Assembly: GCF_006345805.1 (NCBI RefSeq)
Contig: NC_043001.1
Location: 51,150,001-51,214,000 of the forward strand
Length of the DNA stretch: 64,000 bases
From: Octopus sinensis
Taxonomy: Eukaryota
Direction of reading: 5' to 3'
Program-made: the position numbers and the translations under genes
Notes under the pieces: generated by a model
What the model saw: only the letters and a program-made list of their open reading frames with translations
What the model was told of the DNA's origin: nothing
Databases searched by the model: none
Shown: positions 25,461 through 63,770 of the stretch, piece by piece
Layout of the letters: the number at the start of each line of letters is the position of its first letter
Position numbering within the stretch: the stretch's first letter is position 1

Positions 25461-26782
25461 CTGTAGGAAATAAATGGTGATGTTTTGCTTTGGAAAAACT
25501 AAAAGAAAAGAAATAAAAACAAAAACATAAACAGGGTAAGAAGTATATGAATATTGGTCTAATTTTTTTTTCCTGTAAAGAATCCTCAGTAAACTCGTTC
25601 CTTTGTGGTTGTAGAACTTCATCCAATTAGTGCTGCAATAGGAAAAAATAAACATTATTATTAATTTCAGAGCTGTTTGTCTCAAATAACTTAATGAAAT
25701 CTAATTTCGAATGACATAACTCAGTTTCATGAAATGTTTATAAATGTTCTAAAAATACCAATATTTAGCTACAGTTCTATGAAATTATGTTAGTAAGGAA
25801 TTGATACATCTCTCACAGAGTGCTCTTCTATACCAAAAAACATTCACAAAAAATCTGGTATCTAATTCTTCATAGCTGAAATGATTATATTACAGAATTT
25901 AATAGTCAGTAGACACAAAAGAAAGTGTGTGCAATGGGTTAAAATTCAGGACCTTAAGTTGTCTTGTGGTATCTGTTCAACCTTATTATGTTCTTATATT
26001 AATGCCTGTAATGAGACTGGAGCCAAGCTCTACTTATTCAAAATGGCTGCTTTTCACTTGGATAAAAGGACTTTGCTTTTTCCTTGGATAACATCGGTGG
26101 CATAAAGAGGGGAGACTGGTATGCATGGGTGACTGCTGGTCTTTCACATATGACCTTGCCTGGACTTGTGCCTTGGAGGATAACCTAGTTGCAATCCTAT
26201 GGTCATTCATGACAGAAAGGGGTCTTTACTCTTTATATATATATATCTATGTAAATCTGTGTCTGTCTCTCTGTGTCTGTGTTTGTCCCCTCCATCACTA
26301 CTTGACAACTGGTGTTAGTGTGTTTACATCCCCCCATAACTTGATGGTTTAGCAAAAGAGACCAATAAGTACTAGGCTTTAAAAAATAAGTCTTGGAGTC
26401 AATGAGTTTGCCCAAAACCCTTCAAGGTAGTACTCCAGCATGGCCACATTCAAATGATTGAAACAAGTAAAAGAAAAGATTAAAGATAAAGATTCCACTA
26501 TCATCTCTCCTGCATAATCTTCTTATTTCTACATGATTACCATGATTCTAATAAAAACACAAAGCCTGAAATTTGTGGGGAAGGAACTAGTTGATTACAT
26601 CAACCCCAATGGTACTTAATTTATTGACCCCAAAAGGATGAAAGGCAAAGTTAATCTCAGTGGAATTTGAACTCAGAACACGAAGATAGATGAAATGCTG
26701 CTAAGCATTTTGCCTGGCATGCTAACAATTCTGCCAGCTTGCTGCCTTGCCATTAAATTTAGAAAATAATGAAAAATCTCAC

Positions 26783-26832
26783 CTTCATTTTGAGCGTGCT
26801 TCAGGGAATTTACTGACAATGGGTTTAAATAT
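26783..26832 (-). CDS. Cytoplasmic microexon 10 (50 nt, phase 2-1), VYLNPLSVNSLKHAQNE
   Basis: Acceptor catttatcttccag|, donor GAAG|gtgaga; paralog of 30761-30810. Confidence 0.9.
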
Positions 26833-27562
26833 CTGGAAGATAAATGAATCACACACTTAACAACAATGAAATTAACTGTAAAAAGATGAATTATACCTAC
26901 CTACCTATCCACATACATACATATATAATCCCTCTCACACACATACACAAACACACACACACACACACACACACAGACAGACATATTTCTACATATGTAT
27001 ATACATGCATACATACATATATATATTTATATAACAAGAAAAAGGAATTAAACTAATGGAATTTAACTAATCTTGGATTGCCTTGATAACATTGTTTTAA
27101 CATGTATATTCAGCTATATTAATTTGATTGATATTCGCTGTATCTAAATATGTTGCTACAACAGAAATGATCAATGGTATTATATGGTAGAATCACCAAT
27201 TAAAGATCACGCCTCTGCTCACGAATAAATCGTGCTTTATATATATCTTAGTTAAAAGCTATAAATATTTTTTTATCTTTGTTTTTAACTCTTTACATGT
27301 TTTAACTCTTCATATGCATTATCTGTCTGTGTATACATGTATGTGTGTGTGTGAATGTGTGTGAATGTGTGTATGTGTGTGCATGTGCTTGTTTGTACGT
27401 GTGTGTACATGTGTGTATGTTTGTGCATGCATATGCATGTGCATGCTTTTGTTTGTTTACATGTGTATTATTTGTGTGTGTGTGTGAAAAACCACCACTT
27501 CCATAGTTTCCTCACTCGATGAAGAAGGGATTGGGCCATTGCCGAGCAGTGGTTCATTATCT

Positions 27563-27601
<39 letters not shown>

Positions 27602-28010
27602 TGTGTGTGTGTGCATGAGTGTGTGTGTGTGCATGTGTGCATGTGTGTGTGTTTGGCTTTAAACTCATTTTTGCCCAGGAGATAAACTTCAACCTACTCC
27701 CAGGGTCTGACGTCGTTCTCTTAAGGCTTCTTACAAATACTCTCATCAGAAACTGTTGTAGTTCAGATTTAGATAAGTGCCCACCACATTCCATACTCAG
27801 CTGATTCAGCCAAGCAGTGTGATTGTATCTGCAATGATGTGAATGCTATACAAATTCTTTGACCACACAAACAACCATTATCAATTTTTCCCAAAACTAT
27901 CAAATATAAAGATATTTTTCTCTTTTTAAATTTCCAGGTAGATGGATTCAAATGAAAAAAATATATATAAGGAAAGTGTGTGAAGATATATTTTAATTTT
28001 GCATACTTAC

Positions 28011-28041
28011 ACATTCTCAGTAGATTTGCGGTCAATTGTCC
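28011..28041 (-). CDS. Cytoplasmic microexon 9 (31 nt, phase 1-2), GTIDRKSTEN
   Basis: Acceptor ctatttatttacag|, donor |gtaagt; paralog of 31368-31398. Confidence 0.85.
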
Positions 28042-28435
28042 CTGTAAATAAATAGATTTGTTAAATGTAAAGAGAAAAAATGAATTGAGAGAGAAAAAAA
28101 CAAACTCATCACAATTGATGGCCACCTACATATTAGCAGGCATGGTTTTATGGTAAGAAGGTTGATTATCAATCACGTGATCGATGCCAGGGCCCCTTGA
28201 CTGGTTCCCATGCTGCTGGCATGTAAAAAGCACCATCTGAACATGGCTGATGCCAGTGCCCCTGTCTGGCTCCTGTGCTGGTGGAATGTAAAACGTACCA
28301 ACTACACTCTCAGAGTGGTTGGCATTAGGAAGGGCATCCAGCTGGAGAAACATTGCCAGATTAGATTGGAGCCTGGCTCTCCAGTCCACAGTCAAACTGT
28401 GCAACCCATGCCAGCATGGAAAACAGACATTAAAT

Positions 28436-29400
28436 TTCGTTGGTCTCACTCATTTCCTCCTATACTTCAGACTTGATTTCAGTAAAAGTGACCCTGCTTC
28501 TCTCTGAGTTCTGTAGACGTTGCTGGTGCAGGCATTGCTTTTTGTCTAGCAGCTTCTGAATGTCCTCTTTGTGCTCCTAGGACAAATGTATGTCAGGGAG
28601 CCGCTTTTTGCATATGACTTAGTGCATGTGGCCAGCAGCATTGGGGACATACGATGCATTGTGGACCAATTTTCTTGGGCAGCACACGTGTTTGATTTCA
28701 AGATCAACACTTCAAAGACTAAGCTACTCTACGAGACCCCACCAAGATGTCCTATTAGATTGAGATTACCTGAGAAAGTGATAGTACTTGGAGAGCTCCT
28801 AAAGTACACTCTGTGGCCTTTACCTCTCTCAAGAGCACAGTGACTTGTACTAATTCTTCTGACTTCAAAGTTGACTGGCAAATACACTCTCCCACAAAGG
28901 CTTTTGATACTCTTGAGAAGCATCTATGGAGCTGCTATGATTCTTCCCACAACACAAAGATTAAGTTGTGCAGTGCTCCAGTACTCTCTTACCTCCTCTA
29001 TGCCATAGATTGCATGGTCCTCAACTGCAGACACATCAAGAGCCAGACATGAGTCCAATTTTGTCGTCGGCACTCCATCTTACATATAAGATGGTGGGAT
29101 TGCATTTCTAATGTAGAGGTCCTACACTGCTCTGGTGCAGTTAATGTGGAGGCCCTTATTAATCTCACTGCAGCAGCACTGGGCAGAACATGTTTCCAGG
29201 TTAGAAGGCAGCAGGCTCCCAAAAGCAGTTTTCTATGCTGAACTGCATCAGAACAGGAGAAGCCATGGTGGCCATGGTTGCAATACAGGGATGTGCTAAA
29301 GGACTTCAGTGTTTGTCCAGACAACTGGGAGGAGAAGGCCCTCCAGTACATTAAATGGCACTGATTACTGATGTTCATAATTCTAGTTATTGAGGAGAAC
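28436..29400 (+). mobile_element. RTE (BovB-like) LINE 3' fragment with an inverted 5' segment
   Basis: 28577-29400 sense: RE.LFAYD, FDFKINTSKT, KSTVT..NSSD.KVDWQI, LWS...S.NTKIK, VL..LLYA. 28436-28576 antisense: EHKEDIQKLLDKKQCLHQQRL...FTEIKSEV*EEMSE, resembling the RTE ORF2 region upstream of RT. Confidence 0.75.
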
Positions 29401-30760
29401 AACAGAGAGAATATGAAATAGCTCATGGAAGGTATCACTTCTCAATTGTGTCAAGTAACTTAACCTGCAGTAGATCAAGAGCAGGTCTTGTAGTCCACAC
29501 GGGAGCCCGCCAGAGGTGATTCCTTAACAGACTAGTCAACATTGACCTACAACGGACAGCTGCCATCACCAACATTACATAGTGTTTATATGAAATTACG
29601 TGATGTTTGTGTTGTCACTTCCTGTTTTTATTGCAAAAAATTTCCTTTTTTAAGGACAATTTACTTTCACTATTTTACAATGGTAAACTGCATGTTAACC
29701 ATGTGTACATGTATGTGTGTGTAGTTTTCTTATGTAGAATCATGCTGTTCCAGACTTGAGCTGATCATCTCTGTTGATTATTTAGACTTATGACTGTGTA
29801 ATAAATCTAAATAAATAAATGGATATGGCCAGTGAATAAACTCAGAGTACTTTGATGGGATTAATTCAATGAATTAAAAACAAACTGTGTAAAAGATAAC
29901 TTATTTTGATACAAAATTGCTATGTACATCTCTGTTGGCAATTATGTGTCTTTTCTCAGATGTATGTGCATATGCACACACATGCACATTCACCATACCC
30001 ACATGCAGATGCCCAGAGAGAGAGAGAGAGGAGGGGAGGTTTGTTGCAGATCAAGATAGTTCAATGCAATTGTGGGTAATTTCAGTATGAATTATTTACA
30101 AGAAACATAAATAATTTATGGCTTGGCATCAAAATTGAGATTTATAAAGAAAATAAAATAATAGAAATCTTCATTTGCTGAGTGCACACCCAAAATTATA
30201 GCTCAACTCCAATGGAAATTATAATCAACTTTTTATTTTGCAAATTGTAATGAGTGGATTTAAAAATCTACCAGGGTTTTACTCTCATTCAATACAGTAG
30301 CTGCAGGCTAGAAGTGGCCTTGTGGCAGGCCCTGCATCAGATGGCTGGGCATGATTGGGGAAGATCTCTACAGTCTTGACATCACTTTGGAGGATGCAGA
30401 GGGGCTGCCCCCGATGAAGAGCACTGGTTGACCTGATCAGCTCTACACATAATGATGTCTTTGGGGCCACTAACCTGGGATGACCCCAGCCCCATCAAAA
30501 AAAAGCATGAAGCAAAACCAAGCCAAGATCAAATAAATAAATGTAAGCATGCTTTGCAGGATGGGAATATTTATGAGATGGATGATTTGTCTGTAGGTGG
30601 TTGTCAGACAGATGGGTGGAATATGAGGGCATTTTGGCCATTCCACAATCATCTCTCCTGCATAATCTTCTTATTCTTCATGATTACCATGATTCTATCA
30701 TTTAAGCAGTTAAACTAATTAATGTTATTAAATTTAGAGAATAATGAAGAAAAATCTCAC

Positions 30761-30810
30761 CTTCATTTTGAATGCGCTTCAGAGAATTTACAGACTTCGG
30801 GCTTAAATAC
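30761..30810 (-). CDS. Cytoplasmic microexon 8 (50 nt, phase 2-1), EYLSPKSVNSLKRIQNE
   Basis: Acceptor gtttgttttccag|, donor GAAG|gtgaga; paralog of 26783-26832 with synonymous differences (CCG/CCA, TCT/TCA, TCT/TCC). Confidence 0.9.
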
Positions 30811-30984
30811 CTGGAAAACAAACGTATCAAATACTTATCAATGAAGGTGACTAAGAAAACAAATTATATAATTTGACATATAAGTAAAAAATAATAATTG
30901 AAGCCATTTCATGTAACATAAGAGACAATACCAAATATGAAGTGAAAACTTTGAGAGAGAGAGTGTGTGTGTGTGTGTGTGTGT

Positions 30985-31028
<44 letters not shown>

Positions 31029-31367
31029 GCTTTAAAACCATTCTTGTTCTGGTCATAAGCTTCACCTACTCCCTGGATCTGATGTTGTTTTTTATGTAAA
31101 ATTACCTTTAAATGCTCTCATCAGGAGCTGTTGTAGACTAAGATAAGTGCCCTCTACATGGCATGCTCAGCTGACTTGGCCATGCAGTGTGATATTGTAT
31201 CTGGAATGATGTGATTGCAACACAAATTCCTTAACCACATAAACTATCATTAATTTCACCCAAACCATCAGATTCTTTCTCTTTGTAAATTTCAAAGTAG
31301 ATTTCTTAAAGTAGAAAAAAAAAAAAGACAAAGAATTGTAAAGATTTTTTAAAATTTATATACTTAC

Positions 31368-31398
31368 TCATTCTGGGTAGCTTTGAGCGCTTTTGCCC
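31368..31398 (-). CDS. Cytoplasmic microexon 7 (31 nt, phase 1-2), RAKALKATQN
   Basis: Acceptor ctttatttacag|, donor |gtaagt; paralog of 28011-28041 with identical length and splice sites. Confidence 0.85.
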
Positions 31399-31498
31399 CT
31401 GTAAATAAAGTGATTTGTAAAATATTAATATCATTATATAATTACATATTTTTCTCTGTATAGATACATTAGTATATCAACATATATTTAAATATATA

Positions 31499-33179: not shown

Positions 33180-33472
33180 GAGTTAGAGGAGACAGGGGAA
33201 GTAGGAGGTAACTGAAATTGTTGTAAAAGTGGAGTGGGAGAAAGCAACAGAGTAATAATGAAGATTTAGTAGACAGGAGAGTGACAAGCGAGAGATGACA
33301 TGGAGTTGGATAAGTTGCAACATTGTAGAAAGAGGAGAGCATAATAAAATATAGTCCTTTCAAGGAATATGTTAAAATCAATCCTAAAAAGGCTTATATC
33401 TTTATTGTGTAGAAGAGTAGAGGCTAGTGTTTTATTAGTAGAATGGTACAAAAGTGTTTGGTGTATGTATTT
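33180..33472 (+). repeat. 293-bp segment duplicated identically at 35535-35827
   Basis: No difference seen by eye; ORFs 33266-33451 and 35621-35806 give identical 61-aa peptides at an offset of 2355 bp. Confidence 0.92.
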
Positions 33473-33523
33473 GTTGGATTTAATGGACTTGCTTGTTACA
33501 ATGAAGAGAGAACAGAAACTTAC

Positions 33524-33561
33524 TGTCCATATCTATGTAGCCAATTTCTGCATATATAGGT
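33524..33561 (-). CDS. Cytoplasmic microexon 6 (38 nt, phase 2-1), EPIYAEIGYIDMD
   Basis: Acceptor attttctttctttttcag|, donor |gtaagt; encodes a YxxI motif preceded by acidic residues. Confidence 0.8.
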
Positions 33562-35504: not shown

Positions 35505-35824
35505 TATGTAAGAAGTACATGTAAGAGTATGTAAGAGTTAGAGGAGACAGGGGAAGTAGGAGGTAACTGAAATTGTTGTAAAAGTGGAGTGGGAGAAAGC
35601 AACAGAGTAATAATGAAGATTTAGTAGACAGGAGAGTGACAAGCGAGAGATGACATGGAGTTGGATAAGTTGCAACATTGTAGAAAGAGGAGAGCATAAT
35701 AAAATATAGTCCTTTCAAGGAATATGTTAAAATCAATCCTAAAAAGGCTTATATCTTTATTGTGTAGAAGAGTAGAGGCTAGTGTTTTATTAGTAGAATG
35801 GTACAAAAGTGTTTGGTGTATGTA

Positions 35825-36092
35825 TTTTTTGAAAAAAATTTTTCATTTCTTCATTATTATTAGTGCTTTTGTTTGTTTTTCAAACTTGTCAAATAGGATT
35901 TCCAATGCCCAAACAGATTACTCATTTATATAAAGCAGATTTTTGTTTTGTTTAGAAGAGAGGCACTTTGCTTCTTTTTTTTGTTTTTTTTAGGTGAGGT
36001 TCCAGGATAATATAGATAGTTAGATAGCTAGAGAGAGAGAGCGAGAGGGAGAGAGAGAGAGACAGACAAACAAATAGATAGATAAATAGATG

Positions 36093-37769: not shown

Positions 37770-37794
37770 TCGTCATTTTCCGAGATAAATTCGT
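37770..37794 (-). CDS. Cytoplasmic microexon 5 (25 nt, phase 1-2), DEFISEND
   Basis: Acceptor atttttcttttgcag|, donor |gtaaga; three CpGs in 25 nt within a CpG-poor intron. Confidence 0.75.
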
Positions 37795-43070: not shown

Positions 43071-43120
43071 CTTTGTTGAAATCCCTAATGTACTTTATAC
43101 TGGATAACTTTGTACTGTCA
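43071..43120 (-). CDS. Cytoplasmic microexon 4 (50 nt, phase 2-1), YDSTKLSSIKYIRDFNK
   Basis: Acceptor cattatttctttctag|, donor AAAG|gtaagg; open frame fits both neighbours. Confidence 0.75.
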
Positions 43121-51889: not shown

Positions 51890-53039
51890 TGCTTTGGGAA
51901 ATCTGTACTAATGCTTGAATATCTTGAAAACCATATGTTATTTATAATTGTGTTATATAAACAAAGGTACGCAACAGTTCTGGATATTGCAGTAGCAATC
52001 TGTGCTGCATCTTTAGCAATCTTGGGTTTTTCTGGCCTTTGGAATAATAATGAATCATTGAAGTTAGGGCAGCTAAAGTTCAGTTTAAGTTTGTTTAGAT
52101 TAATAACATTAGATTAATGGATGTAGGTAGGTGTGTGTCTATACAGGCATGGCTGTGTGATTAAGAAGTTTGTTTTCCAACTTCATCCATATGGTTTCAG
52201 GTTTGTCTAACTGCATGACACTCTTGGAAAGTGTCTTCTCCCGCAGCCCTGGGCTGACCAAAGCCTTGACTAGATTTGATTGACAGAAACTGAAAGAAGC
52301 CTGTCATATCTTTTAGTTGTTTCAGTCAGTAGACTGTGGTCATGCTGGGGCACCACCTTGAATTTTTAGTCAAATGAATCGACCCCAGTACTTATTTTTT
52401 AAAGCCTGGTACTTATTCTATTGGTCTCTTTTGCTGAACTAAGTTACGGGGACGTAAACACACCAATACTGGTTGTCAAGTGGTGATGGGGGACAAACAA
52501 TACAGACACATGCATACACACCACACACACACACACACATACACAATATTAGATTAGTGAAGAACTCCAGGTATCCTTGTGGTAGGGTCCAAGTTATGGA
52601 GTTCATCACTAATCTAACTAATAGTGTCAGCCTGGTATGCCAACAGAGAGCTTATGAAGTATTCTACCTGGATTAATAATCCATCACTATTTATTTTGTT
52701 ATATATGAGTATATATATTATTCGAATTTACAGAAAACAAATGACTTAGACAGGTGAAGGAACAACAAGCAAGTGTATTAGTTTAACACTTGGGAAGAGT
52801 GGAAAAGTCTTTGATGTTTTGAGCATATGCTCTTTGACAGAAAGAATTGAGAGGAAAAAAGAGAGAGAAAAATGTGTAGGGATTAATAGTTCAACATGAT
52901 GAAATCAGACCATGCTTGTGAAAAGACCCTAAATGATGGTGCATATGCAACTGCACATTCTCTATGCTGCAGAAACACATGTTGGTCATTTATCTAACTA
53001 ATTATGTTGTATAATTAGCAATTAAAATTAAAAGAACAT

Positions 53040-54035
53040 TTCTGGCATCAGGTTGAACATTGTAGTGTCTTTGCAAAAGATGCTGTATAACAGAAGCTTC
53101 AAGACTGCATTTGAAAAAATTCCATCTAACTCCCTAGATTACAAGGTAGTTATCAGATCAGGCAAGAATCCATCTTGTCAACCTGGAAGGAGGTTTAATG
53201 CTCCAACAGCAAATGAAATAGCTATGCTTCTGGCTGGGCAAGAACATGACAAGCATGACATTGTCCTCCATCTCAGAGACAGCACACTGACAGACACAGT
53301 CCAACTACAAATGGAAGCTTCCAAAAATACCATGCTCACAGCATTCTTCAAGCTCTGTCAAGATGATGAATTTGCTACAAGACTGCTATACAATGAAGTT
53401 CCACATTTCTATACCTGGTACCAAAACAAATGGAAAAGACATGCACTTGGAGCACCCACACATCATCTGGGAATTAAAAAACCAGACACACTTGGCAGAG
53501 TCTCTGTTGCTCATCCCAACTACTAAGAGTGTTACTATCTAAGTCTTCTATTACACCATGTCAAGTAATCCACATTATTTACAGCCTTACATATGGTTAA
53601 TAACATAGTATGTCAAACATATTGCCAGGCTTGCCATCTCAGAGGTCTTCTAGAAGACGATGCACACTGGGATGCCACTCTGACAGAGGCACAAATGTGC
53701 AAGTCTCCTTTGCAGCTGAGAAACCTCTTCTCCATCATGGCAACATGATGGGTGAGAATGTCTTCATTCCAAGGATACCTCTTATCTCAAATGACCTCCC
53801 CTTTCAGTTCAAGAGACTGCAGTTTCCTGTCAAACTCAGCTTTGCAATGTCTATCAACAAAGCACAAGCTCAATCGCTAAAGGTGGTGGGGCTTAACCTC
53901 CTTCAACCTTGCTTCACACATGGTCAGCTGTATGTTGGATGTTCTAGAGTTGGAGATGAAAAGAACCTCTACATTCTCAGTGATAAACATGGCAAGAGAG
54001 AAAACACAGTATATGAAGAAGCACTTACATGAATA
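53040..54035 (+). mobile_element. Internally deleted Helitron (RepHel remnant)
   Basis: Three RepHel pieces: RRFNAPTANEIA (pre-Rep), TMLTAFFKLCQDDEFA..LLYNEVP..YTW...W (post-Rep) and the PIF1 C-terminus QFPVKLSFAMSINKAQAQSL..VGLNL..PCFTHGQLYVGCSRV. The HUH motifs and helicase core are absent. Confidence 0.9.
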
Positions 54036-54849: not shown

Positions 54850-56911
54850 CTGAAAACTGGCACATTCACACACCCTCATAACATAAAACAAAATATTTTG
54901 AATGCTACAAATATATAAACGCATACAGAATGATATTTCAATAATGTTACCCATGCAAAAGCATAAAATGTTAAAGTTGACAAACTCAATGCTTTTCATT
55001 CCAGCAAAATAGCCATGCAAAGCATAAAATGTTAAAATTGACAACCTCAAGACTTTGTTATTCCAATAATTTTCAAGAGAAGATGTTTTTGTTGAACTAT
55101 AAGATGAAAGGAAAATCCTTAAAGTAAAAAGAAATTAATAAAAAACAAGGTATAACAAAGAAAGCAATAAACAAGCAGGAGTGAGAAAGATTTGAAATGT
55201 TCTTTTCTACTCTAGGCACAAGGCCCGAAATTTTTAGGGAGGGGGACACTTGATTAGAGTTGCAACTGGTACTTAATTAGAGTATGCAACTGGTACTTAA
55301 TTTATCGACCCCAAAAGGATGAAAGGCAAAATCGACCTCAGTGGAATTTGAACTCAAATGCAAAGACAGACAAAATACTGCTAAGCATTTCGACCAGCAT
55401 GCTAATGATTCTGCCAGCTTGCCGCTTTAAAGATCTGGGATATTGATGGAACAATTTCAGCATGGGTTATAAGAAAAGTTAGTAACTGATTCCAGCCTGA
55501 TCAGGCTCATATCCTCAGGGAAAAAGAAAGCTGATTAGTAAGAAAAATGTACAGTGCTTTTCTTTCTATCTACTAACTGACCTTCAACTCTTATATTAAG
55601 GTAGCAAGCTGTCTATGTTGTTAGAGCATCTGATAGAATGCCTCACAGAATTTGTCCTGACTCTCATTCCCACCATAACCATTCTCTCTTTCTGTATCAT
55701 TCTCCAATATGTACTGGGATTTTCTTAAAACAGTCAGATATGATATGAAGAAGTCTCACTGGTTTTACTAGCTGGCAATAACAGCAGTTGACAAAAGTAG
55801 AAGTTGGTGCTGAGATAAAGGCAAGAGTAGGTGAAGGGTAGCAACAGAGGTTGTTCAGAGAGGAATAGGAGTGCTGGCTGGCAACACAGCATAGTGAAGT
55901 TAAAGTGTATTGGATAGAGGATGATGGTAGCCAAATGCAGCTTCTTATATACTACTGAAGGGCAAGTGGGCAGTGATGAAGATGATGTGATCAGCAACAG
56001 GTGGTAAGGACATGATAGATGGAGAGCTCTTAGGCAAAAGGAAATGTAAAAGCAGAGATGATTTGGTAGAGAGGAGGTGGAGCAAGGATGCTAAGTGAAG
56101 TGAAACAAAGGCCTGGGTAGGTAGAGGGCAGCAAATGTAGGCTTAAAAGTACCACATTATGGGGTGACAATAGATTTTCATGATGGAGCACTGGAATAAC
56201 AGGTGATTACTAGACTAAGCTACCATCTTTTTCTATTTTCTATTTTTTCAGTTTCTTTTATTTTTTAGCTTATATTTTAATTCAGCACTGTACAATCTCT
56301 TCTACATCCAACATTATTAGCTCTTTATATTGAATAGTTAGGTAGAGTTAATTGGAGGGTAATGCGATTTTTGTCCTTGGATAGCAACTGTTATTTCCTA
56401 TTTGCTTACCCCTAGAAAGTATGAAAAATGGCTAATATTTTCTTCAAACTTTGCTTTTGTCATGTTTATTCAAACCCCAAAGAATCCCTCTCACACATGG
56501 CTATGATGCTCTCCAACATGATCAGAAATGCACATATTGTCAGCCCCTGAGGGACATGCTCAAGGGATTAAGGTCAAATGAACGACAAGCAAATCTGTGG
56601 TATTGAGCAGAATATTTGCTATAATGATATTTCTGCTTCAGCAACTCAGCACTGAATCTGTCTGACATGTAACGGAAAATAGGTCAGTTTCAAAGGTCAC
56701 AACATCAAAGTTTGAAGGGAACAGTAGTCATTTCCTTTGATTTCTAGATAGAAGCAAATAGGAAATAACACTTACTGACCAAAGACAAAAAAATAAAAAT
56801 AAAATAAAAATTTTGTTACATAGTGTTATACATTAAGTGTTAGAATTATTATGATAGATGTTAGAAAATGAAGAAAAGAAAAATGAATTGTTAAAAAAGA
56901 AAACAATTTAC

Positions 56912-56936
56912 CTTGAATATTCCCTTTTTTCAGTAA
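56912..56936 (-). CDS. Cytoplasmic microexon 1 (25 nt, phase 1-2), VTEKREYS
   Basis: Long pyrimidine tract ttttgttttgtttttttacag|, donor CAAG|gtaaat; open in the phase needed after the TM exon. Confidence 0.7.
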
Positions 56937-59502: not shown

Positions 59503-59610
59503 CTGATGGGATCTTCCTGATAGAAAAGTACCAAAAGCAGCATATGATAAGTGTAACAAGAATGAGAACTATCACAGCACACGTAATTCCAATGATCAGT
59601 ACATTATTAG
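59503..59610 (-). CDS. Transmembrane exon of the same receptor
   Basis: 108 nt, phase 1-1, acceptor gttatgtactttcag|, donor TCAG|gtaaag. Encodes ANNVLIIGITCAVIVLILVTLIICCFWYFSIRKIPS: a hydrophobic helix followed by CC, aromatic residues and an RK stop-transfer signal. Confidence 0.9.
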
Positions 59611-60111: not shown

Positions 60112-61328
60112 CAAATAAGAAAAGGGAGAGGATAATCAATCGACAAACATCAGCCTGTAAACATTCATTTGGATCTATTTATTAATTAATTACAATCATA
60201 TGTATAAGTAATCAAAACAAATAAACAAATAAAAATAAGTAAATGAATAAGAAGTTAATGAGGGAAAAATACTAAACTCTTACAGCTATTTCTACTTTGG
60301 GGGTGTCCAACTTGTCAAGGTTTCCACATCATACCAGTAATATACAGGGATTGTACAAAGGTTGAACAAACATTGGACAGGGGTTGGACAATAATTGAGC
60401 CCCAAAGCTTCATCAGAGAGACCATAATGTTAGGAATCTAACATGTGATGAAGTAATATAAAATAATATAATAAAATAATAAAAAAAAAATAGTAAGAGA
60501 TAGCAAAAAAGTCAATTCCAAAGTAATATCCGTAAGTTATGGGATTATAGCTTATAGTAAAGAAAGTCACTCCCAGAAGTGATTTCCATTGGTTCTGAGA
60601 GTTACATCCTATTTCAATATACTGGAGGAAATAGCAATGGTAAGACATTGTGGAGTGAGGTTAATGGGATAGTCCATATCACAGGATCAAAAGTTAGAGG
60701 CTAATGGCTATGTAATAAAGTATCATAAAAATTAACAAAGTTAATGTAATGTGAACTTGCTTGGGAAATCAATACATAACTATATCAATGAAGGAATAAT
60801 TTGGGTAAAACTTGAGTGCAGGTCGTGCATGAAGACATTTGGTATTCCTCATACAAGATGAAGAAAGGGCCAATTTTTATCCCAAGCCATCAAGGACAAG
60901 AGGAAAGTCAATGCTATGAAGCTTTTGAACAAATTCAAGCATCCCCTTCAAATGAACGTTTTGGTTTATCTCAGATAAGAAAAATTTCTGTCAGAATCAA
61001 ATGGTGAACACAGAACAACCTTTGACTTACCGTGTCCCCAAAATATGTACTGAGAGTGATAAAAATCAAACACCCAGTCAACATGATGGTGTTTGGAGTG
61101 ATCATTAGTGATGGCAATGTTAGCCTCCATTCATCTTCCCACGTGGCCTCAGACTCAACACAGAGTCCTACATCAAGTGCCTGGTGAAGGTAGTGATGCC
61201 CTGGATCAAAAGGCTGGCTGCTGGAAAACCCTGTGTCTGGCAACAGAACTCTGCACCATACTACACAGGCAGGAGAAACCAGTCATGGCTGTCAGACAAT
61301 TTCTGTGACTACATCACCCCTAACATCT

Positions 61329-61561
61329 ATTTCTTTACTACCCACAAGGGGCTAAACACAGAGAGGACAAACAAGGACAGACAAATGGATTAAGTCGGTT
61401 ATATCGACCCCAGTGCATAACTGGTGCTTATTCAATCGACCCCGAAAGGATGAAAGGCAAAGTTGACCTCAGCGGAATTTGAACTCAGGACGTAGCGGTA
61501 GACGAAATACTGCAAAGCATTTCGCCCGGCGTGCTAACGTTTCTGCCAGCTTGCTGCCTTA
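61329..61561 (-). mobile_element. Young family-B SINE inserted in the maT transposase, 16-bp TSD
   Basis: TSD atcacccctaacatct at 61313-61328 and 61562-61577; removing the SINE and one TSD restores ...DYITPNIWPPNSPD. Confidence 0.95.
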
Positions 61562-63449: not shown

Positions 63450-63770
63450 CTGTAACTGCATTTCTTAAAATAAATGTAGCATTTGATACACCTTCTTTAT
63501 TGTGAACATATAGCGTGTATTTTCCAAAATCTTTCTCTCTAATATTTTTTAATTCTAATTGAGCAATATATCCTGGTAACTGAACTGTTTCATTTACCAC
63601 AGTTGCTTGACGATTTGATTGGGATAAAATTACCCCTTCTTTTAGATGATTGTTATGGAGCCACTCAACATGAATTTTCTGAGAGTATGAATAAATGAAA
63701 CACTTAACAGTTTTGCTCTGTGACTCTTCAGCTTCAATGACATTTTCTAGATGATCCACAATAGGAACAC
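63450..63770 (-). CDS. Ig-like domain exon of a type-I membrane receptor (membrane-proximal domain)
   Basis: 321 nt, phase 1-1, acceptor ttttttaaatttcag| and donor ACAG|gtaagg. Translation GVPIVDHLENVIEAEESQSKTVKCFIYSYSQKIHVEW...GYIAQLELKNIREKDFGKYTLYVHNKEGVSNATFILRNAVT has the Ig hallmarks (B-strand C, C-strand W, DxGxY, NxxG). Symmetric phase-1 exons of about 100 codons are typical of IgSF domains. Confidence 0.9.

Follow-up and report, generated by a model that had tools for sequence, protein, structure and literature searches.

Tandem duplication of a two-exon tyrosine cassette in the cytoplasmic tail of a predicted immunoglobulin-superfamily receptor of Octopus

The window analysed here, a stretch of 64,000 nt from Octopus sinensis (assembly GCF_006345805.1, contig NC_043001.1, positions 51,150,001 to 51,214,000), contains on its minus strand 12 exons of the gene LOC115211591, annotated as 'uncharacterized protein' with isoforms X1-X7; all coordinates given below are window positions. 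Over 40,382 bp, window 64000-23619 matches Octopus sinensis GCA_006345805.1 CM016863.1 with 100% identity. The exons were located with ag/../gt borders (a slash marks an exon border), and their joined translation equals residues 328-597 of RefSeq X1 exactly. The product is predicted to be a single-pass type I membrane protein and a receptor of the immunoglobulin (Ig) superfamily; it has 3-4 Ig-like domains, and exons of 25-72 nt encode its cytoplasmic tail of ~125-150 residues. Close to the end of this tail a pair of small exons with a tyrosine motif occurs twice in tandem; these two cassettes, termed B and A in the order of the transcript, are the subject of this report. The tail reads ...IRKIPS-VTEKREYS-(RIFLSSYSSTKTSSLENYWNNKVL)-SDSTKLSSIKYIRDFNK-DEFISENDE-PIYAEIGYIDMD-R-AKALKATQNEYLSPKSVNSLKRIQNE-G-TIDRKSTENVYLNPLSVNSLKHAQNE-ALIG, so that in X1 both cassettes (B, then A) are followed by ALIG and the stop codon.

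Self-BLAST of the window gave three collinear blocks in the same orientation that join copies B and A, introns included: block 1, B 31428-30952 / A 28071-27573, 74% over 506 columns, E 4.6e-89; block 2, B 30868-30727 / A 26895-26752, 78%, E 1e-27; block 3, B 30697-30640 / A 26550-26492, 95%, E 3e-17. Both cassettes lie in direct orientation between the same two flanking exons of LOC115211591. Each consists of 31 + 50 nt (81 nt) with intron phases 1-2-1, as in O. bimaculoides, and all eight splice sites of the two cassettes are canonical. The sole open frame in both is phase 1, as set by the donor of the transmembrane exon; the codon directly before the tyrosine is split by the cassette intron. 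The 31-nt exons differ at 10/31 positions and the 50-nt exons at 10/50, with no indels; the changes in the 50-nt exons comprise 3 synonymous and 7 protein-altering ones. The consensus of the cassette peptides is ...(Q/E)N(E/V)-Y-L-x-P-x-S-V-N-S-L-K-x-x-Q-N-E. No third copy of the cassette was found by tblastn across the window.

These data agree closely with a sequence-only reading of the same DNA, which had described two alignable duplicates at ~26490-28080 and ~30640-31420, introns included, each with a frame-preserving 31-nt and 50-nt exon; the exact positions of these exons were established on the minus strand (Table 1). The splice sites it quoted (tttatttacag/, /gtaagta, ttccag/ and GAAG/gtgaga) were all found, the product peptides match the translations, and the alignment returned the same count of differences between the 31-nt exons. 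Its description of the changes in the 50-nt exons as synonymous applies to three of them, the other seven changing the protein.

Table 1: Positions of the cassettes, the duplicated units and the other exons of LOC115211591 in the window.
Feature	Position	Strand	Evidence or remark
Cassette B, first exon, 31 nt, phase 1 to 2, (R)AKALKATQN + first two bases of Glu codon	31368..31398	-	canonical borders, X1
Cassette B, second exon, 50 nt, phase 2 to 1, (E)YLSPKSVNSLKRIQNE	30761..30810	-	X1
Cassette A, first exon, 31 nt, (G)TIDRKSTEN + first two bases of Val codon	28011..28041	-	X1; missing from X5
Cassette A, second exon, 50 nt, (V)YLNPLSVNSLKHAQNE	26783..26832	-	X1; missing from X5
Duplicated unit, copy B, upstream in transcript	30640..31428	-	self-BLAST
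Duplicated unit, copy A, downstream in transcript	26492..28071	-	self-BLAST
Spacer between copies, 2.6 kb	28072..30639		dispersed SINE-like repeat 28176-28434
Intron directly after B50, element at 30727-30760 + 30640-30697	30640..30760	-	paralogue identity
Intron directly after A50, element at 26752-26782 + 26492-26550, split by SINE-like insert	26492..26782	-	paralogue identity
Membrane-proximal Ig-domain exon, 321 nt, phase 1-1	63450..63770	-	Pfam I-set 24.3 bits, cut-off 23.7
Transmembrane exon, 108 nt, phase 1-1, encodes ANNVLIIGITCAVIVLILVTLIICCFWYFSIRKIPS	59503..59610	-	exon chain = X1
Tail exon, 25 nt, VTEKREYS	56912..56936	-	exon chain = X1
Optional tail exon, 72 nt, RIFLSSYSSTKTSSLENYWNNKVL	55046..55117	-	exon chain = X1, isoform comparison
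Tail exon, 50 nt, SDSTKLSSIKYIRDFNK	43071..43120	-	exon chain = X1
Tail exon, 25 nt, DEFISENDE	37770..37794	-	exon chain = X1
Tail exon, 38 nt, PIYAEIGYIDMD, with YAEI + YIDM tyrosine motifs	33524..33561	-	exon chain = X1
Last exon, coding part, ALIG + stop	25619..25632	-	matches annotated gene end at O. sinensis locus

Copy A is enlarged by an insert at 26559-26748 that resembles a short interspersed nuclear element (SINE) and is dispersed in the window (at least 10 copies), and by microsatellite-rich sequence at ~26895-27573. Two parts of the spacer (~28460-29540, plus strand, degenerate; ~30260-30540) resemble, in translation, 3' ends of long interspersed nuclear elements; Pfam gave nothing for the one such open reading frame that was scanned, and eight long open reading frames of transposon-like appearance gave no Pfam hits. 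Long CA and GT microsatellites occur in opposite senses in the A31-A50 intron (26936-26983 and 27320-27650), and GT is also present in the B31-B50 intron (30963-31028), the numbers after the letters denoting the exons by length. Apart from these microsatellites the region has no strong inverted repeats, and searches of it for tRNAs and Rfam families gave only sub-threshold, microsatellite-driven hits (Rfam miRNA included).

Homologues were searched for with HMMER (exhaustive search, 1.84 billion representatives), the query being the translation of the Ig, transmembrane and cassette exons. Three close relatives were obtained, with names taken from cluster look-ups: O. vulgaris CAI9722396/7, 'kin of IRRE 1'; O. 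bimaculoides XP_052823758.1, 'kin of IRRE-like protein 1'; Argonauta hians GAB1602869.1. The O. sinensis LOC115211591 proteins were recovered by a later profile search. Word-indexed protein searches with the cassette peptide and with the Ig and transmembrane exons as queries gave no match; since the exhaustive HMMER search recovered the orthologues, these blanks are attributed to an index effect and not to true absence. A literature search under the LOC115211591 gene identifier found no paper.

Transcript support was taken from the RefSeq and O. vulgaris gene models, i.e., at the level of annotation. Omission of A31 + A50 from the exon chain gives isoform X5 (XP_036359323.1, 570 aa), in frame, and omission of the 72-nt exon gives isoform X4. 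Both cassettes are contained in RefSeq models X1-X4, X6 and X7 (6/7) and in all O. vulgaris and O. bimaculoides models; a single cassette (B) is found in 1/7 of the RefSeq models, and an isoform without cassette B, or without both, does not occur among the annotated models. The proposal that a cassette can be skipped in frame is thus borne out at annotation level for cassette A. To judge from these models, the usual product has both copies, and an annotated isoform leaves out the second one. The optional 72-nt exon at 55046-55117 (-) is variable in its own right: it is skipped in X4 and in the O. vulgaris models, it is 21 nt shorter in X2 owing to an internal 3' splice site, and an older O. 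bimaculoides model (UPI00071D8416, 317 aa) terminates inside it.

The window and the O. bimaculoides locus are collinear, with identities of 84-91% in orthologous blocks and 73% in cross-paralogue matches. All four cassette exons occur at that locus, unchanged in length and splice sites; identity to the O. sinensis orthologue: B31 – 30/31, B50 – 47/50, A31 – 29/31, A50 – 48/50. At the protein level 51/54 cassette residues are identical between these two species (cassette A differs at 2/27), and the O. vulgaris cassettes are identical to those of O. sinensis. The alignable introns diverge by 19.8% between the paralogues and by 8.2% between the O. sinensis and O. bimaculoides orthologues; converted into Jukes-Cantor distances, these values make the duplication ~2.6 times older than the split of the two species.

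The Argonauta hians protein GAB1602869.1, treated as the orthologue because it was the only close relative from this genus in the HMMER search, has one cassette, KPRTLRSTQNE/YLCPVSISSQTYKK-stop. Its first cassette exon is 31 nt long and ends GAATGA/gtaagta, the split falling at the same place; a second cassette was not found at the Argonauta locus, 10 kb downstream included. The counterpart of the 50-nt exon (L002 25052-25115) has an in-frame stop, and 11 nt further on the donor-like sequence AAG/gtgagaatttt stands as in Octopus. Because this donor-like sequence is retained past the stop, the ancestral 50-nt exon was probably internal. Copy B is closer to Argonauta than copy A (BLOSUM local alignment score 58 vs 45) and on this comparison is the more ancestral-looking copy. 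Since three Octopus species have two cassettes and the Argonauta homologue has one, the duplication appears as an Octopus-specific doubling of an old two-exon unit; the comparisons place it in the Octopus lineage, after separation from Argonauta and well before the split of O. sinensis and O. bimaculoides. The suggestion that the tail gained its second copy by exon-pair duplication is supported by this distribution.

The most similar part of the duplicated unit is intronic. An element of ~90 nt, made up of the first 31-34 nt of the intron after the 50-nt exon and a 59-nt block (the latter standing ~30 nt later in copy B), is identical between the copies at 86/89 positions in O. sinensis (~96%) and at 84/89 in O. 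bimaculoides. For comparison, identity is 63% in the 70 nt upstream of the 50-nt exon and 80% in the exon itself (Fisher p = 1.4e-5), and 63-80% in the rest of the unit. A dispersed repeat was rejected as its identity; the element occurs only after the two 50-nt exons. Its copy-specific differences are common to O. sinensis and O. bimaculoides, so that the element has undergone no gene conversion since the species split. Divergence of the element between paralogues (3-6%) is near that between orthologues (1-4%), and for this reason it could be a gene-conversion tract from around the species split; it could also be a constrained intronic splicing element serving the very short exons. Pairing of the element with the surrounding 8 kb of pre-mRNA reached -37 kcal/mol at best, not above shuffled sequences (mean -34, best -43), and the local fold of the conserved intron segment gave z = +1.1, i.e., no stable structure.

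Four successive pairs of tail exons (25 + 50, 25 + 38, 31 + 50 and 31 + 50 nt; 56912-26783) are all of phase 1-2-1, each with tyrosines. It is a tentative and rather doubtful thought that the whole tail stems from repeated tandem duplication of one two-exon tyrosine module, with the ~90-nt intronic element enforcing joint inclusion of the micro-exons and permitting regulated skipping of a module; homology of the cassette peptide to the two earlier tail exon pairs was not supported (best p = 0.07 vs shuffles). If true, it would make the tail of a cephalopod Ig receptor a modular one whose signalling is tunable by splicing.

Two YxxP sites, YLSP (B) followed by YLNP (A), stand 27 residues apart downstream of the transmembrane exon. 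The proteins of O. bimaculoides, O. vulgaris and Argonauta were aligned together with a distant transcript-derived homologue (P0012, ending ...EDEYLNPAIIRYS), and E, Y, L and P of E-Y-L-x-P were invariant across these four aligned homologues. The homologous tails also keep an upstream (I/V)-Y-(A/E)-E-I and, in octopods, G-Y-x-x-M; the YAEI/YEEI and YIDM/YTVM motifs are kept in Argonauta. YxxP corresponds to the rule for Crk/CrkL/Abl-type SH2 domains, the YAEI type resembles the pYEEI rule of the Src SH2 domain, and G-Y-x-x-M resembles the pYxxM rule of PI3K p85. The pYxxP sequence is the Crk/CrkL SH2 consensus, a specificity older than animals (PMC5043372), and transmembrane scaffolds with cytoplasmic YxxP (DCBLD1/2) bind the CRKL SH2 domain once phosphorylated by Src-family or Abl kinases (PMC6029619). 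The two copies are not equivalent in this respect: Y-L-N-P of copy A fits the Grb2-type pYxN rule, Y-L-S-P of copy B does not, and X5 would therefore lose the predicted Grb2-type site. From the YxxP pattern and the conservation of E-Y-L-x-P we infer tyrosine phosphorylation and SH2-adaptor binding at the cassettes.

Immunoreceptor tyrosine-based inhibitory, switch and activation motifs (ITIM, ITSM, ITAM) were compared as (S/I/V/L)xYxx(I/V/L), TxYxx(V/I) and two YxxL/I spaced 6-8 residues, respectively. All three identities were ruled out: QNEYLSP and ENVYLNP have N at position -2 and P at position +3, and the spacing of their tyrosines is 27 residues.

The explanation favoured here, a tandem-duplicated exon pair of the tail with both copies retained and a putative pYxxP docking role, is considered likely as a whole. 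The last tail module, a two-exon unit of 31 + 50 nt with phases 1-2-1, was duplicated in tandem together with ~30 nt of upstream and ~125 nt of downstream intron. Splice sites, length and frame were preserved in both copies, which transposable elements then pushed 4.1 kb apart. The invariant tyrosine with proline at +3 would be a short linear motif which, phosphorylated on tyrosine, recruits an SH2 protein preferring pYxxP (Crk, Abl, RasGAP or Nck type); copy A would additionally suit Grb2-type pYxN binding. The duplication would raise or diversify the docking capacity, and splicing would tune docking.

Retention was estimated as follows: an open frame with at least 16/27 identical residues was obtained in 11% of neutral simulations; for zero indels in 81 nt, P = 0.106 at the rate of 14 gap openings per 505 intron columns; eight unchanged splice-site bases at 80% identity have a chance of ~0.17. 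The product of the three, a post hoc joint figure, is ~0.002. The open frame, the lengths and the splice sites are kept in three species. By these estimates, retention of both cassettes under neutrality appears unlikely.

Several observations weigh against this explanation. Conservation of exons and splice sites above that of the neighbouring intron, which the sequence-only reading had made its own refutation test, was not found between the copies: the exons are identical at 61/81 positions (75%), the alignable introns at 369/460 (80%), and the 31-nt exon is the most diverged part, with 68% identity. The dN/dS ratio (nonsynonymous to synonymous substitution rates, Nei-Gojobori) between the copies is 0.61 (p = 0.36), i.e., below 1 but not significantly so; by part, codons 1-11 give 0.77 and the stretch starting at the tyrosine 0.49. 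In the comparison with O. bimaculoides, 154/162 exon positions and 1437/1566 positions of the 200-nt flanks are identical, which is not decisive. The transcript evidence for the cassettes consists of gene models, the orthology of the Argonauta protein follows from a sole close match, phosphorylation and SH2 binding are predictions from sequence patterns, and two YxxP sites compare with 7-15 in known scaffolds.

Of the other explanations, the best surviving, though rather unlikely, is that E-Y-L-x-P is a different short linear motif: a signal for sorting or endocytosis, a site of serine phosphorylation (S-V-N-S-L-K) or another binding site. Tyrosine phosphorylation is a prediction here, and between the copies S-V-N-S-L-K..Q-N-E shows the same degree of conservation as the tyrosine. 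However, the tyrosine and P(+3) are invariant as far as the most distant homologue, whereas S-V-N-S-L-K is not retained in Argonauta and P0012; proline at +3 departs from the established YxxPhi sorting rule, and the tail has further SH2-type motifs (YAEI/YEEI, YIDM/YTVM) that are kept in Argonauta.

It is less probable still that cassette A is a decaying copy, still spliced in and without a function of its own, so that the duplication was effectively neutral and docking sites were not expanded. The dN/dS ratio indistinguishable from 1 and exons conserved no better than introns are what such decay would leave, and the first exon, with its 10/31 differences, has changed mostly in protein-altering ways; an isoform without A is annotated. 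Set against this, the length, the frame and four splice sites of copy A have been kept over ~2.6 times the divergence of O. sinensis and O. bimaculoides, only 2/27 of its residues differ between these species, Y-L-N-P-x-S-V-N-S-L-K and Q-N-E are intact, and A is present in 6/7 RefSeq isoforms and in both O. vulgaris models. Mutually exclusive use of the cassettes, the usual outcome for exons duplicated in tandem, is very improbable: B31 joined to A50 would likewise keep the frame, and tandem exon duplications are often linked to exclusive choice (PMC9013439), but with 81 nt each both cassettes fit in frame, both are contained in 6/7 RefSeq isoforms and in every model of O. vulgaris and O. bimaculoides, no model is without B, and a search for competing RNA pairing gave nothing that exceeded shuffled controls.

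Tandem exon duplication is a well-described source of new and alternative exons (PMC9013439, PMC9741552). As in the described cases, the octopus exons are adjacent and of the same orientation, length and phase within one gene, and the younger copy is alternatively used. Unlike the usual case, the duplicated unit is an exon pair with a split codon, neither exon being usable alone, and unlike mutually exclusive duplicated exons the octopus copies are included together. Variants of PECAM-1 (CD31) without exon 14 cannot bind SHP-2 (PMC5664058). The octopus protein is likewise a predicted Ig-superfamily receptor with an alternatively spliced tail, in which skipping of small exons removes a tyrosine docking site (here a putative one); the likeness is one of gene architecture, and in predicted function such receptors, with tails tuned by the skipping of small tyrosine-bearing exons, come nearest to the octopus protein. 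The PECAM-1 motifs are ITIMs and those of octopus YxxP, and the exons of PECAM-1 are not known to have arisen from one another by recent duplication. Repeated cytoplasmic YxxP conserved across species is shared with DCBLD1/DCBLD2 and p130Cas (BCAR1), for which Crk/CrkL SH2 binding is known, whereas here it is predicted; those proteins have 7-15 motifs against two in octopus, and their architecture is unrelated (CUB/LCCL/FV-VIII, or SH3 + FAT-like).

With Kirrel/NEPH the octopus protein has in common that it is a single-pass Ig-superfamily protein with tyrosines in the tail. It differs in the number of Ig-like exons, which is three in O. bimaculoides and, in O. sinensis X1, four (two of them mutual duplicates), as against five Ig domains, and its C-terminus, ...QNEALIG, is not a PDZ-binding T/S-x-V. 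Pfam detected two significant Ig stretches in the protein, and a search of solved structures gave, with E values from 3e-5 to 4e-4, OBCAM, neurotrimin (IgLON) and titin, but neither a Kirrel nor a SYG-1 chain. Membership in the 'kin of IRRE' family was not adopted in view of the Ig count, the ALIG end and the best structure matches (IgLON/titin); the name looks like a generic Ig hit.

Other repeats were seen at the locus. The first Ig-like exon, upstream of the window, is also tandemly duplicated in O. sinensis (two near-identical units of ~107 aa): X1 has both, X6 and X7 have one each, and the exon is single in O. bimaculoides. A direct repeat of 297 bp (33180-33476 and 35535-35831; identity 99.7%) lies on either side of the 38-nt PIYAEIGYIDMD exon at 33524-33561 without duplicating any exon; of its two copies, O. 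bimaculoides shows just the one downstream of the 38-nt exon. The repeat either arose by duplication in O. sinensis very recently or is an artefact of the assembly. Outside the cassette region, open frames at 53032-54029 (+) and 61124-61390 (+) resemble the C-terminal parts of a Helitron/PIF1-type helicase and of a mariner/Tc1-type transposase, assignments left unconfirmed by Pfam (no match at E <= 0.01).

The exons and isoforms described are already in RefSeq, tandem exon duplication and the skipping of tail exons are both well known, and no general view is changed by the finding. What the locus provides is a clean and datable case of motif multiplication in a receptor tail, in which a split-codon exon pair was copied as a unit, both copies are spliceable and the younger one is optional. 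An uncharacterised cephalopod Ig receptor with YAEI, YIDM and two YLxP motifs is accordingly a candidate for studies of how octopuses signal through tyrosine kinases.

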